DNA of 64,000 nucleotides, taken from Pavona decussata. Its lineage: Eukaryota. The notes under the pieces were generated by a model. It searched no databases and was not told the DNA's origin. It saw nothing but the letters and a program-made list of their open reading frames with translations. Positions 52,731 to 60,582 of the stretch are shown here, in pieces. The DNA lies in assembly GCA_977016875.1 (NCBI GenBank), contig CDRNST010000008.1, positions 1,674,001-1,738,000 on the forward strand. Direction: 5' to 3'. The position numbers and the translations under genes are program-made. How positions within the stretch are numbered: position 1 is the first letter of the stretch; each line of letters begins with the position of its first letter.

Positions 52731-54064
52731 ATGGTAGGGCACTTTGAAAAATGGGAATTTTAAAATAACTATTTTATTACCTAGCATGATATCACTTCAT
52801 TTCCCATTATTTTTAAAATAGAAAATATGGAAAACCCAATATTACATTCATGGTTTACTAATGTGTTAAAAAACTAATTCCCATTAATGGGTTTAAAGGA
52901 AAAACCTATTAATGGGAAATATTCGGATTTCCCATGGATGGGATTTGAGAATGGGTTAAGCATCATTTCCAATCTTCAAAACCATTAATGGATTTTGATA
53001 TTTTTTTCCCGTGATGCTGATGACACTGTAGGTTCCCTCATGGACGGGGTGCTACTGTTGGCAAATGCTAACCAGGAAAGAGCTGATGAGACCTCAACTC
53101 AATGCCAATTATAGGCATCTCTGTAGCCCGTCAAATCCCGTAACAAGTTTACTGTTTGAAGATGACCTCACAAAAGTGGTCAAAGATATATCAGACACCA
53201 ACAGGCTAAGCTCCAAGTTGACCAAAGACACCAGCTCCACACGCTCCGCAAGAAGCAGTCAACAATGCATTCACTGGCAGGCTAAGAGAAGATATGATGG
53301 TGGCCGCAACCACAACAACAAGCAGTCAAAAAACTACCAGAGCCCCCTCCACTTCAGAAGGAAGCAGGAGGGGAAGAAAAAGAGCGACTGAACTCGAATC
53401 CTAATCAGGTTAGTTTAAGCACAGAAAAATGTGCTGGTAGGCTAAGGCATTTTTTACCAGCTTGGTCGAGTATCACAACAAACCAAAATATTCTGGACAT
53501 TGTACAGCATTATGATTTGGAGATTGAAACTCCCAGTCAGTCTACGCCAGCGCCTGAAATTCAGTTTGACTCCAATGAAAAAGATATTATTGACTCAGAA
53601 ATTACTCACCTGGGTGTTATTGAACCTGTGGCAAATATTGCATGATTTTGAGTCTCAAAGGGCTCAATGAGGGGGACATTGGGGATTTGCGGTGTTGCGG
53701 TGTTGGGTATTTTTTCGTGCGGTGTTACGGTGAATAAAATCTCAGCTTGCGGTGTTGGGGTGTTCTTAAACGTCACAGTGTGCGATGTTTGCGTCTTAAA
53801 GTCTGCGGTGTTCGGTGAAACGAGATTGTCTGCGATGTCACAGTTTCCATTTTGACGCTTGTCAGTTCTAAATTTGGCCCCCATCATGTCTGATTTGAAA
53901 TAAAATACACGCTAAGGGTTCTCCAATACTCTCTAGTTAATATTAAATACGCTGCCCGTCACCAATCCTACACCTGTTGTTCATTTATATTAAGTAACTT
54001 GATAAGCAACGTGACCTTCGCGACCCGGATCGCCACATGTACGTCGTCCGGTCCGTCAGGCAAG

Positions 54065-56167
54065 ATGAGCGAAAACCTTGCGACTGATGCAGCTGATCCT
54101 GTCGATCCTGAATGCGCAGTTCATTGCGTAGCTTTTTTTTACGAGGAGGACAAAGGTGGAGAGAATTATAGGTGGAAAAACAAATTTCGATGCTCCATAA
54201 ACAAGGAGGAAAAGAGACTCGCGATTTTTGTAGAATGCATTTGGTAAGTTACACGCATTGTCTCTGTATCTGAATATCGTAGCTAGTCTTAACTGTATAA
54301 GGTCGTACGGAGGTCAATCTAATATCGGTCTAAGCTCACTCCAAGGTCGTTCGATCTTCTGGGACCTTTAAGACACTGTGTAGATCACTATTTTTGTCTA
54401 CTTTCTCAAATGGGTCAAATGGGTATTGATATCAAGTGCGTGAATGGAAATAAACGGAACACGGGAGACCAGGGGGGAGGGACGGGGGGAGGGGTAAGGA
54501 AAGTGACCTCTCCCGCTCTTTGCACTTGCCCTTGTGTATTTTTTTATATATTTAAAAAAGAAATAACCGAGAAAAAAAAAAGAAAGAAAGAATAAAATTT
54601 CAAGCCAACGTGGTAATGCGAAAACTAGTTTTGGCTAGAATAAATAAGTCGCGGGCTGGTCTGGGTTTGAAAAATAAACACAGGGACGTGCCGCTGGTTT
54701 ACATAATTTGGCCTCTCTGCCCTGAACAGACCTGAACAGGATCTGAATAGAGTATATAATTCAAGCAAGTGTGTCTTAAACAGGGTGTGAAAACGTCTCA
54801 GAAAGGGTATAGCACAACACTATCACCGAGTATTTTGGAGCAATACGAAATTGGAGAGGTTCGTCATTCAGGTTAGCAGGTCATCATCACGAAATCATTT
54901 TCAGGACCAGATAATTTATAAGCCCTTATGGGAAGGATATTTTCCAAAATTATGTACTCTTTTCAGGTTATTTTTGGCCTTAACAGGGTCAGGGTTTCAA
55001 ACCCCCCCCCCCCCATACCCAAACACTGGACAATTCCTACCCCACCCTTCCCTACCCGGGAGTTGTATCATTATTCAGGACTGTTTACCAGTCAACGCCG
55101 TCGATAGCTTATGAAGGTAGTAAGCTAGTTATATAAGGCTGCAGCTATGCTAATGGCATAAATATGCTCTTTTTAATTTAGCGAACGTTCTGGCATACGG
55201 AAAACAGCCAAAAGGTTAGGTTTGGGAGATGATATAGAGGTCCTGTTAAATAGGTATGTTTAACCATATTTCTTTCATGCTGTTAAGAAATATGTTTGAT
55301 CTGATAATGTTTACACCACGTTTATTTTGTTTGTTTTATTATTTAAAACAGGGAAACCAAAAAAGAGCGTTTGTCAATTAAGTCGGATCACCAGCTGGAG
55401 TTGGAGTTACCTTCAATTTTACGAAGCAAAGAGAAATTTCAACGTAAGTTACTCCTTTTTTGCTTTGAGGGTGCACCTTTTTTTTTACAACAGCGCTTTT
55501 TCTCGGCCAGGGTTCAATAAAACCCACCTGTCAACCTGGTGCACGAAATATATACGAGTATACCTGAAAATATAGGAATAGCGAAAAGTTGCTGTATAGT
55601 TTTGTACCAAGTGATTTTGTACCTGCACGAATAATAAATTTTGTTATGCCTGAATGTTTTTCCTGTTTTGTTTTTATCACTTCCAGTTTTTGTCTATCCT
55701 ATTAAAACTGTTTTCTCCAAGAACTGTCAAACAATTGAAATCAAGGAGAGCTGCTCCCGCAAGACGTTAACGCCTACACCATCGATATCACCTTCAATGG
55801 GTCCAGTGGAGCTCACAGAGGAAGAAAAAACAAAATTGAATGAAGGTAATGGTGGAAATATATTATATTAAAATTCATGCTTGGCTCCGAGCCCTGGGGG
55901 AATAAAACAAAAGAAATCGCATCGAGGGTAATACTATCGAAAATAGCTTATTTCTACAATCAACACTTTCTCGTAACTGTTTAGAATTGGTCAAGAGATG
56001 CGAGAGTAAACTGATCAGATGTGGCAAACATGCAGTTGTGAAAACAAGAGGGAAGAGTGGCAAAGAAGTACAGTGGCCATGGAAAATAACGTGTGGCACT
56101 TGCAAACGCAATATACAGCTGAGATACGATAGTGATCTGAAAGGACGAATCGCCTTTTTTGACCGAC
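54065..56167 (+). pseudogene. Five 5' exons of the internal gene of the 6-bp-TSD element
   Basis: GT-AG-bounded exons at ~54065-54243, 55181-55253, 55352-55443, 55687-55845 and 55986-56167. The last contains WKITCGTC. Confidence 0.5.
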
Positions 56168-58256: not shown

Positions 58257-60582
58257 ACTTTTCCATCCTCATAAACCTTATGCATAATGACGTAAAACAA
58301 TGCTTTTGCGGCTTGAACGTGCATTGTGGTAGTTGAAGTCACGCACGAATCCAATATGGCGTTGTATTTCCCTGAAGCGGTAAATTTAAATGGCAGAAAT
58401 GCTGACAAGTGTTCTAATGTGGCCGGCAGTCGAGTAGCTTCTCGGGGTATTTGTTTGAGCCTTCAGATAGGTCAAATACTACGTACTTTTTCTATTTCCC
58501 CCGCTACTAGCACTATTGACGCCATCTTGGATTTGAGCGTGACTACAACTACCATACTGCCTTTCGGGCGTGTTACGTGATCATGCATACGGCCTATTGC
58601 CCGAGTACCATTAGTTAAAAGGTTTTAAAGCCTGAAACTTAAATATTCAAGAAAGGAGACTAGGAGTATTTTTCTGTGACAATGTCAGGACACGCAACTC
58701 TCCGGAAATCTTCTTGAAGCACGAGGCAGCGATAATTTTTCCGCTGAAGTTCATAGATCTTCTAGTATTCTGGCGTCAAAGTGTACGTAACAACCAAGAT
58801 CGAAAGGCATATGCAGAGTAACTACAGCTTTGGCCTCGTTATGTGTTTGTTTCAGAGATTTTCTTAAGGACAAAGGCAAAATCTTGAAGGCTTTATCCTG
58901 TACTGACGCTTAAATCATCAGACTAAAAATAGATATTGCAGTGACGGTGTTCCACCGACTTTTCTTGCCGTGATGCGGTGTTCGGCAATATTTTTTGCGG
59001 TGTTGCGGTGTTCAGAACCCCCCAATGTCCCCCTCCTCAATACGCACACTGAGAAACACCATTTCAAAATGGACACCCTTTGGTCTGCTGTGCGACTCAT
59101 GACCCCATGACTGTTTTATGGCCTCAATCGATTTGAAGGATGCCTACTATGTAGTTCCCATTGCTGAGGAAAACCGCAAATACTTGAGATTCTATTGGCA
59201 GGGTTGCCTATACCAATACACGTACATGCCAAATGGGCTTTCATCTGCCCCTAGGTGTTTTTCTAAGTTGCTAAAAAGAGTTTACTCCATATTAAGACAG
59301 CACGGTCACCTCAATGCTGGATACAATGATGACTCGTATCTTCAAGGTAGTGACACTACAGAACGTCTGCTTAACATTTCAGACACGCAGACCCTCTTTA
59401 AGGATTTGGGGTTTGTGATTAATGTGGACAAATCATGTCATCCCAGCCCAACAAATTAATTTTTTGGGTTTTGTCCTGGATTCAGTGTTGATGACAATTA
59501 CTCTTCCTGATGACAAAAAAGCTAAAGTAAAATCTATTTGCAAACAGTTGCTTTTCAAAAGTCATCCTGCAATTACAGAGCTCGCTCAGTTAGTGGGCAC
59601 ACTTGTCTCTTTCCTACCCCGAGTACAATTTGGTCAGCTTCACTACAGGAATTTAGAAATAGAAAAGAACTTGGCCCTCAGAAAACATAAGGGTCACTAT
59701 GAAGCTCAGTTAACGCTCTCCTCAAGCGCAAAGGATGAACTCTCTTGGTGGCTTGAAAATGTAGATAAGGCTTTTAATCCAATTTCACATGGATATCCGG
59801 TCCTTGAACTCAGAATTAATGCCTCAAAAAAGGGTGGGGCGTGTATTTGGATGGTGACACTACCCAAGGCTTATGGTCTGTTTCAGAAAGCCAGTTGCAC
59901 ATCAATGAGCTGGAACTAAAGGCTGTTCATTTTGCTGTGCAGGCGTTTGGTGACAGGCTAAAGAATAAACATGTCAAAATACCTTGTGACAACTCGACCA
60001 CTGTGGCTTACATCAATGCTATGGGGGGCACAAAATCTCCTCGTTGCAACCAAACTGCATATGCCATATGGGATTGGTGTGTAAACAACAACACTTGGTT
60101 AACTGCAACTCACATAGCTGGAGTGGAAAATACCGAGGCTGACAGAGAGTCTTGACTGTTCAATGACCGAACTGAATGGACCCTAAAAAGGGAGATTTCT
60201 GCTCAGATTACCACCCACTGGAGTACCCCAGAAATTGATTTATTTGCAACTAGACTTAATACACACCTCCCCAAGTTTGTCACATGGCAACCTGACCCAG
60301 CCTCATGTTTTGTGGATGCGTTTAAAATTAGTTGGAAATCCTTGTATTTCTATGCTTTTCCCCCTTTCTGTCAAATTCATAGATGCCTGCAAAGGATATT
60401 GGACGAACAAGTACCTCAGGGAATCATGATCCTACCACTTTGCCTATCCAAGTTTGGTGGCCACAACTGCTGAAAATATTAATTGCAATTCCAATTGTCT
60501 TGCCGAAGCAGGAGGACCTACTTTCACTATCACACTCCCCTCAAACACTACACCCCTTGAGGAGGAAATTGACTATGCTGGC

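Follow-up and report, generated by a model that had tools for sequence, protein, structure and literature searches.

The present analysis concerns a DNA transposon in Pavona decussata (GenBank assembly GCA_977016875.1, contig CDRNST010000008.1, positions 1,674,001 to 1,738,000 of the forward strand), located in a stretch of 64,000 nucleotides that is referred to here as the window. Positions 53669–59035 of the window form a 5,367-bp insertion whose inverted ends are perfect over 16 bp, and which carries a 473-residue open reading frame (ORF; 56835–58256, plus strand) coding for NHL blades and for what appears to be the C-terminal part of a transposase. The insertion is an internally deleted copy of a cut-and-paste transposon, the transposase of which probably belongs to a P-like family containing NHL and SAP modules. 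The architecture of the insertion, the composition of the protein family and the fold of its N-terminal half are described below, followed by the alternatives that have to be weighed.

Insertion site, ends and sister copies

The left terminal inverted repeat (TIR), GAGGGGGACATTGGGG, occupies 53669–53684 on the plus strand and the right one 59020–59035 on the minus strand. In a motif search of the window this sequence was found exactly twice, and two matches were obtained in none of 100 dinucleotide-preserving shuffles. The TIRs are directly flanked by CTCAAT, at 53663–53668 and at 59036–59041, as expected of a 6-bp target-site duplication (TSD). When each 300-bp flank of the element was used as a separate query against the genome, four uninterrupted paralogues of the target were recovered (C241, C60, C99 and C80; 90–95% identical), in all of which the left and right flank matches overlap by exactly 6 bp. 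The empty sites read ...SLKGLN/THTEKHHFKMDTLW... with an RVT_1 match directly downstream. These findings confirmed two claims of the original prediction, which had been made from the letters of the window alone, namely that a 16-bp TIR and a 6-bp TSD delimit the element (borne out by the shuffles, three copies and the four empty sites) and that its excision restores a DIRS reverse-transcriptase sequence.

The interrupted host element continues at 59118–61564, where the next downstream ORF matches RVT_1 (E 5.8e-10) and a later one weakly matches RT_RNaseH, the reverse transcriptase itself being decayed, with many stops. This arrangement fits a decayed DIRS-like retrotransposon, in the reverse-transcriptase region of which the transposon landed. 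A tyrosine-recombinase-like HSTR...GW motif was also noticed, by eye only, in an ORF of the host element at 61337–61564.

The same ends delimit copies of different length, which measure 8.05 kb in a sister copy on C104 (L061 1595–9647), 5.37 kb in the deleted copy of the window and 1.2 kb in a derivative on C185 that shares both ends with the window element. The sister copy is flanked on both sides by TATAAT and the short derivative by CAAAAA, so that 6-bp TSDs are present in three of the four copies having both ends, and the insertion targets comprise the DIRS reverse transcriptase as well as unrelated sites. The fourth is a short element of 1.25 kb (L062, G000:C62:3035867–3037133) with both TIRs and unrelated 6-bp flanks (AGTTCA and TTGTAT), which may represent two ends joined by recombination or a rearrangement after insertion. 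TIRs, a TSD of fixed length, empty sites and deleted derivatives were thus all observed, as in Class II cut-and-paste TIR transposons.

Inward of the TIRs, a 9-mer search revealed subterminal repeats of TGCGGTGTT, which occurs eight times exactly in the window, five times at no more than 150 bp from the left TIR and three times at no more than 62 bp from the right one. The left cluster (53688–53812, plus strand) consists of five exact and two one-mismatch copies, and the right cluster (58974–59012, plus strand) of the three exact ones. Since all eight exact copies lie on the plus strand, the ends of the element are asymmetric and not mirror images of each other. These 9-mers are probably binding sites of the transposase. 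A further inverted repeat of 42 nt (58321–58362 and 58519–58560; 86% complementary, 156 nt apart) was observed in the element's 3' untranslated portion.

In the whole genome, 70 matches to the TIR were found (32 exact and 38 with one mismatch), against 8 for a reversed control. However, 24 of the 32 exact matches trace back to a single composite repeat, about 300 bp long, with an identical outer flank and only a 33-bp end fragment, and therefore the number of independent ends is far below the raw count. This composite repeat (24 loci among L003–L029, for example G000:C12:229780) spans about −110 to +180 around the TIR match and contains the first 33 bp of the transposon end, that is, the TIR plus TTTGCGGTATTGCGGT, together with the constant flank …CGCGCAAGTCGATCG; next come an A-rich stretch, then a tRNA-like segment and finally a T/A tail. 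The repeat resembles a short interspersed (SINE-like) element that captured a transposon end. Beyond this repeat, a TIR of the type GAGGGGGACATGGGGG bounds, on their 3' side, two groups of related gene copies, on C45 and on C96, whose proteins are 68–75% identical, and the same type lies 3' of the gene copy on C104. Gene and TIR type consequently co-occur in at least four loci, which makes the association a repeated one, and the linkage spans at least three subfamilies. For the distant subfamilies (the L064, L066 and L067 genes), TIRs and TSDs were not found within the flanks examined.

The deleted gene of the window and its protein family

Alignment of the window element to the C104 copy gave 93.6–96% identity and revealed that the former is without 2,458 bp held by the latter (L061 6482 to 4024), which encode the N-terminal catalytic half of the protein. 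The junction of this 2.46-kb internal deletion is at 56617/56618, with a microhomology of at most 1–2 bp. The deletion took positions 1 to about 510 of the family profile, comprising both catalytic-candidate Asp residues, a Cys cluster, a DxxH motif and the first NHL blades. When six-frame pieces were compared with the family profile, the window retained positions 568–1014 only (56721–58253; E 4e-109), whereas the C104 copy covers positions 3–1012 on one uninterrupted DNA stretch of about 3.4 kb with about five frame disruptions. A 322-bp retroposon tail ending in (AATTG)n is nested at 56257–56578 on the plus strand and is absent from the C104 copy. It had been suggested earlier that the Asp-bearing region disappeared near a LINE (long interspersed element) tail at 56340–56580; the loss is real, although the deletion is clean, lies about 40 bp from the retroposon insert and was not caused by it. 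At least 588 candidate copies of the (AATTG)n retroposon are present in the genome, and the 40 that were scored are 98–100% identical, which indicates a very young, high-copy and recently active LINE or SINE family. Conversely, the C104 copy carries a 610-bp insert (L061 7381–7990) that the window copy is without; this insert has an ORF ending ...RACRTWNVLPTELR...LFKTLLLQYY..., which by eye only resembles the C-terminus of a LINE ORF2.

Several parts of the gene remain in the window. Immediately after the deletion junction, a SAP-like remnant (...KKDDFVNLANELKLTPTGTVAELKGK...; 56618–56776, plus strand) is out of frame with the 473-residue ORF, whereas it is in frame in C104, and in the window it gave no significant Pfam match to SAP. 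The ORF itself, whose frame is open from 56721, contains ...TVASV...LLSCMTLDVENCHSTVH and comprises the last NHL blades, a helical segment presumed to be the C-terminal catalytic half, and an acidic tail. This presumed C-terminal catalytic part corresponds to ORF residues 196–400 (57420–58034, plus strand) and carries QGPxG, an LDVENCHS helix and GxxVRQxTxRxxTT...GTLP. Glu278 of the ORF, presumed to be the third catalytic residue, is encoded at 57666–57668 on the plus strand, precisely where it had been placed before, and falls in a predicted helix (residues 75–92 of the modelled part). The 5' region (53999–56208, plus strand) is 94–96% identical to the C104 copy and contains short ORFs with plausible splice signals, which are putative exons. 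Among them, a Cys-containing ORF at 55987–56208 (...CGTC...GRIAFF...) is conserved in further subfamilies, with copies located 5' of the family genes on C2, C96 and C6, and is similar to the N-terminal end of P0018, a Priapulus protein (BLASTP E 4e-5); it may be a DNA-binding exon forming the head of the protein. No Pfam match was obtained with the window's own ORFs, 5' exons included, or with the C104 fragments, and no intact gene of the window copy's subfamily was found. Having lost the two Asp residues together with the Cys cluster, DxxH and the first blades, the copy in the window is non-autonomous and derives from a longer form by deletion. It is a fossil, 4–6% diverged from its sister, and an ordinary dead deletion derivative.

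The wider family is widespread in marine invertebrates. The 473-residue ORF has 98 genomic matches, from 93% down to about 25% identity, most of them decayed and some long and open, and intact relatives are represented by ORFs of 1,201 (L064:2591–6196) and 1,158 (L065) residues. Full-length relatives measure about 1,150–1,200 residues. Public homologues of 1,100–1,400 residues, all unnamed, were found in Mytilus, Priapulus caudatus, Paramuricea clavata, Desmophyllum pertusum, Exaiptasia, Clytia and many unlabelled assemblies, so the family reaches octocoral, stony coral, anemone, hydrozoan, mussel and priapulid data. The family alignment was built from about 40 distinct representatives, the total match count of its profile being made up mostly of unrelated NHL proteins. 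The 1,158-residue relative (L065:2381–5857, G000:C86) starts only past the first Asp region and has three SAP/NHL modules in tandem (positions 273–732, 513–732 and 513–952 of the family profile), and it may be a rearranged or domesticated transposase derivative.

The alignments (A1–A4, numbered according to P0002) revealed a conserved LRGPG motif and a series of catalytic candidates. The first Asp (Asp1) is D118, invariant in DG[MT]A[LI]KP, and the second (Asp2) is the invariant D286, found together with E288 and N291 in D[SC]ExxN. Between them, eight conserved Cys residues form a cluster of about 60 residues, which is presumably zinc-binding and is predicted to be inserted before strand 4. 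About 33 residues past Asp2, the motif PDxVHxGK contains D319 and H322, both invariant in the 15 sequences of A1, and its His reaches at least 90% conservation among 44 members; this corresponds to the signature of the C/DxxH class. An RNRDRMD motif and the invariant H450 and P452, located in two NHL-like blades, are also conserved, as are QGPxG, SLLTLVVENLFSxMR with E869, and GQSVRQxTVRNxxTKDxPGTLP towards the C-terminus. The catalytic-candidate Glu, in the L[TL]xxVEN helix, is invariant in all 36 sequences of A4. Asp1 and Asp2 are separated by about 167–168 residues, and Asp2 and Glu by about 570–583. The order along the chain is thus Asp1, Cys cluster, Asp2, DxxH, helices, two blades, SAP, four blades, helices and Glu.

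The presence of both accessory modules was verified in the family. The NHL repeat PF01436 was matched in 24 of the 44 members searched against Pfam, and the family profile matches solved NHL propellers (SOQ1, NHLRC2, TRIM2/3/71 and Thin) with E-values down to 5e-23; the count of about six blades derives from the profile ranges. SAP (PF02037) was matched in half of the members (22/44), with a best E of 1.3e-11. The NHL repeats reported earlier are therefore genuine, and a SAP module, which had been read in the 3' part of a spliced gene, does belong to the family, although in the window copy it is out of frame with the 473-residue ORF.

Fold of the N-terminal half and probable relationship to P elements

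Residues 1–470 of a relative from the same genome, the L066 ORF, were modelled with AlphaFold on a 39-sequence alignment. This gene copy (C258) has its downstream part one stop codon away, 44% identical to the window ORF. The model displays a confident RNase H fold (mean predicted local distance difference test score, pLDDT, 84.6), in which D160 ends the first long strand, D327 directly follows strand 316–326 and the DxxH motif comes after strand 356–359, with the Cys cluster (253–316) between helix 236–250 and strand 316–326. In a Foldseek search of the PDB, the strand-transfer complex of the Drosophila P element transposase was by far the best and the sole strong match (6pe2_A, E 4.2e-9; 6p5a_A, E 2.4e-8; probability 1.00 each), followed by ISCth4 (4e-3), Hermes (1.2e-2), RAG1 (1.2e-2 or weaker) and Transib (0.15). 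VIA-align, an independent alignment against structure representatives, likewise superposed model residues 22–445 on residues 128–428 of the 6p5a chain (Z 11.2 over 290 residues), the runners-up being retroviral integrase cores (Z 6.4 or lower), ISCth4 (4.9), Transib (4.3) and RAG1 (4.1); Hermes was not among the 50 entries listed. Since the alignment covers the helices preceding the core and the first helices after strand 5, the match extends past a generic RNase H core; in fact, the helices that follow DxxH align to the P chain up to residue 428.

The nearest ESM-Atlas models of the N-terminal half are THAP9/P clusters carrying PF21787, PF21788, PF12017 and PF21789. Besides NHL and SAP, PF21787 is the sole recurrent Pfam family, matched in 7 of the 44 members (best E 1.9e-4), and the Mytilus trossulus protein P0205 passes its curated cut-off (26.7 versus 24.6 bits), while most members stay below it. 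For the C-terminal half, PF21789 (TNP-like RNase H C) is carried by each of the nearest named ESM-Atlas clusters, in many cases along with PF22824 (THAP9_C) and PF21788 (the GTP-binding domain), at a score of 0.92 with about 170 shared features, a type of result that was rated as a lead. The AlphaFold model of ORF residues 196–400 is helical, with the Glu in helix 75–92, and less confident (pLDDT 73; predicted template-modelling score, pTM, 0.43). The P-like assignment is thus well supported by the modelled fold of the N-terminal half, whereas for the C-terminal half conservation and language-model similarity suggest it. Since the fold search with the C-terminal half returned only generic matches, the catalytic role of the Glu and the placement of the propeller inside the RNase H fold are proposed from conservation, chain order and the same similarity.

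In the genome, canonical P-like genes were observed as well (C58:1993711, C13:608751, C251:1510986 and others), which match PF21787 with E-values of 1e-24 to 1e-17 and are clearly set apart from the lineage with NHL repeats. In several further open frames of great length (1,327–2,402 residues), the match is to the second half of PF21787 only.

The resemblance to P and THAP9 (6P5A and 6PE2) goes beyond the fold. Both are cut-and-paste TIR elements with subterminal repeats and deleted non-autonomous copies, the latter being well known for P elements (PMC7776569), and both would have a split RNase H with D, D and E, in which a further domain is inserted after strand 5 and ahead of the Glu helix; the N-terminal 445 residues, pre-core helices included, find their best structural match there. 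The differences are nevertheless considerable. In P elements, D230 and D303 are 73 residues apart, D303 and E531 are 228 residues apart with a GTP-binding domain between them, the TSD is 8 bp long, and the TIRs of Drosophila P and of the zebrafish THAP9 transposon measure 31 bp and 13 bp, respectively (PMC7776569). The family described here has an eight-Cys cluster and about 167 residues between Asp1 and Asp2, about 570–583 residues between Asp2 and Glu with SAP and about six NHL blades nested in them, a 6-bp TSD and a 16-bp TIR starting with GAGGGGG. Additionally, a small Cys-containing N-terminal exon is conserved instead of a detected THAP domain, and most members fall below the detection limit of sequence similarity. 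Most probably, therefore, the family is a strongly divergent lineage that works like the P type and is related to P without being a regular member.

Several observations weigh against this assignment. Profile searches of the PDB with the whole protein, the N-terminal half and the C-terminal half retrieved NHL, SAP or spurious sequences only, the P element transposase being absent throughout; the 44 members gave no Pfam match to the P-like C-terminal families; and no THAP domain was recognised by Pfam either in these members or in the window's 5' exons. The isolated C-terminal model, with its low pLDDT and pTM, retrieved only generic helical hairpins. The TSD of 6 bp and the GAG... ends depart from the 8-bp TSDs of P elements (PMC7776569), and the short element on C62 has both TIRs without a matching TSD. 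Finally, the fold search has no bearing on a closer kinship with Kolobok, Dada or KDZ because, to our knowledge, none of these transposases has a solved structure.

These points are the basis of the most serious alternative, according to which the transposase is sister to, or a member of, another C/DxxH superfamily (Kolobok, Dada, hAT, MuDR or KDZ), and its P likeness reflects only the class architecture, in which the RNase H fold is split by a helical insertion domain; the class comprises P, hAT, Kolobok, MuDR and Dada (PMC10045372). The alternative gains from the missing sequence-level match, the missing THAP domain and the TSD length, from the inability of Kolobok, Dada and KDZ to compete in structure searches, and from two ESM-Atlas neighbours that are unnamed fungal clusters. 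However, P stands far above the other solved transposases of this class in both structure comparisons, the named neighbours of both halves are P/THAP9 families, one member exceeds the cut-off of the P-like PF21787, and KDZ, hAT and MULE matches were absent from the Pfam results of the 44 members; the alternative is consequently regarded as improbable, though it deserves to be kept in mind. Among its candidates, Dada makes 6–7-bp TSDs and has a DDE core with DxxH, large intron-containing genes and, in some cases, extra domains after the second Asp, but it is without TIRs, targets small nuclear RNA and transfer RNA genes, and has Asp residues 68 residues apart and CCCC and CCHC zinc fingers located elsewhere (PMC3706591); NHL and SAP have no occurrence in the main text of that paper. 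Dada was rejected given the perfect TIRs, the insertions into a DIRS reverse transcriptase and unrelated targets, and the type of core observed here. IS3EU/GingerRoot elements share the 6-bp TSD, but have an integrase-like core without insertion domain and TA..TA termini (PMC10045372), and were rejected because of the GAG..CTC termini and the P-like core with an insertion domain. The hAT transposase Hermes also has a split RNase H with a helical insertion domain, and some hAT elements have short TIRs. Its match to the model is nonetheless weak (Foldseek E 1.2e-2, template-modelling score 0.19), hAT dimerisation and BED domains are not recurrent among the Pfam matches, and hAT TSDs are of about 8 bp (PMC3706591).

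A different kind of explanation would regard the NHL/SAP protein as a captured host or passenger gene, or as a domesticated one, within a TIR element moved by another transposase. Considered in isolation, the window copy could suggest it, as it holds only the propeller and the C-terminal part and no Pfam transposase domain, and the L065 ORF, with duplicated SAP/NHL modules and without the first Asp region, demonstrates that modules can rearrange. Yet the sister copy retains the missing part, which is P-like, dozens of decayed copies exist, as expected of a mobile element, and the 8-kb copy contains no ORF for a hAT or any other transposase. Because no other transposase is present and the same TIR type flanks the gene in four loci, across at least three subfamilies, the gene is not a passenger; this reading was rejected and is considered very improbable. 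The further proposal that the TIR/TSD pattern is a product of chance or of the assembly and not a discrete insertion could appeal to the single composite repeat behind 24 of the 32 exact TIR matches, but it is refuted by the four paralogous empty sites with their exact 6-bp overlap, by the second full copy and the short derivative, each with its own 6-bp TSD, and by the shuffles, in which the TIR pair never appeared, leaving it a negligible probability. A P-related transposon with an internal deletion thus remains the favoured interpretation, and the suggestion of the original prediction, a divergent P-related DDE transposase with a propeller ahead of the catalytic Glu, was upheld insofar as full-length homologues have a conserved D, D and E and a modelled RNase H fold closest to that of the P element, with the Glu-bearing half assigned by conservation and language-model similarity.

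Proposed mechanism and significance

An intact element would be about 8 kb long and would encode a transposase of about 1,150–1,200 residues with a split RNase H of the P-element type. Its domains would follow one another as a helical pre-catalytic region, Asp1 closing the first long strand, the eight-Cys cluster, Asp2, the DxxH motif, a helical insertion domain holding about two NHL blades, SAP and about four further NHL blades, and the Glu helix. The chain order, together with the P-like first half, places the propeller and SAP module within the insertion domain of the split RNase H. Such an enzyme would cut and paste by two-metal DDE chemistry, with a staggered attack of 6 bp on the target, and the window copy could have moved only with a transposase supplied in trans. 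Insertion domains of DDE transposases hold cofactor or DNA-shaping roles, as illustrated by GTP in the P element and by the hairpin chemistry of hAT, Transib and RAG1. The module formed by propeller and SAP may replace the GTP-binding insertion domain of the P element or add to its role, and could offer a platform for DNA ends, target DNA, chromatin or a partner protein.

The combination of a DDE recombinase with a six-bladed β-propeller recalls RAG1–RAG2 and ProtoRAG/Transib, with the difference that both parts are found here in the same chain. RAG2 is a separate kelch-type protein and not an NHL domain within a catalytic domain, Transib makes 5-bp TSDs, and the structural match to RAG1 and Transib is weak (Z 4.1–4.3 in VIA-align, Foldseek E above 0.01). 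The loose resemblance to RAG1/RAG2 pointed out earlier can therefore be retained as an analogy, and homology is not claimed.

Taken more broadly, these observations permit a tentative proposal, which we hold to be possible but put forward with clear reserve. According to it, an ancient P-like lineage in at least cnidarians, molluscs and priapulids would form a deep clade or superfamily of its own, in which the GTP-binding insertion domain was rebuilt around a six-bladed NHL propeller with SAP embedded in it and the RNase H domain acquired a zinc cluster. The propeller would serve as a built-in accessory module engaging DNA ends, the target or chromatin, the whole being a single-chain counterpart of RAG1 plus RAG2 with a 6-bp stagger in place of 8 bp. 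No transposase with an NHL propeller was found in the open-access literature, Repbase and Dfam lying outside that scope, so that earlier cataloguing is possible.

As far as could be found, an insertion domain with a whole β-propeller and SAP has not been described for any transposase, and here it is conserved in proteins of more than 1,100 residues in several phyla. The family would provide a named home for many invertebrate proteins currently listed as 'uncharacterized', as well as a new P-like system with another target stagger, of which intact ORFs are present in the genome. It may also represent a natural example of an accessory propeller joining a recombinase, which bears on ideas about the cooperation between RAG1 and RAG2.

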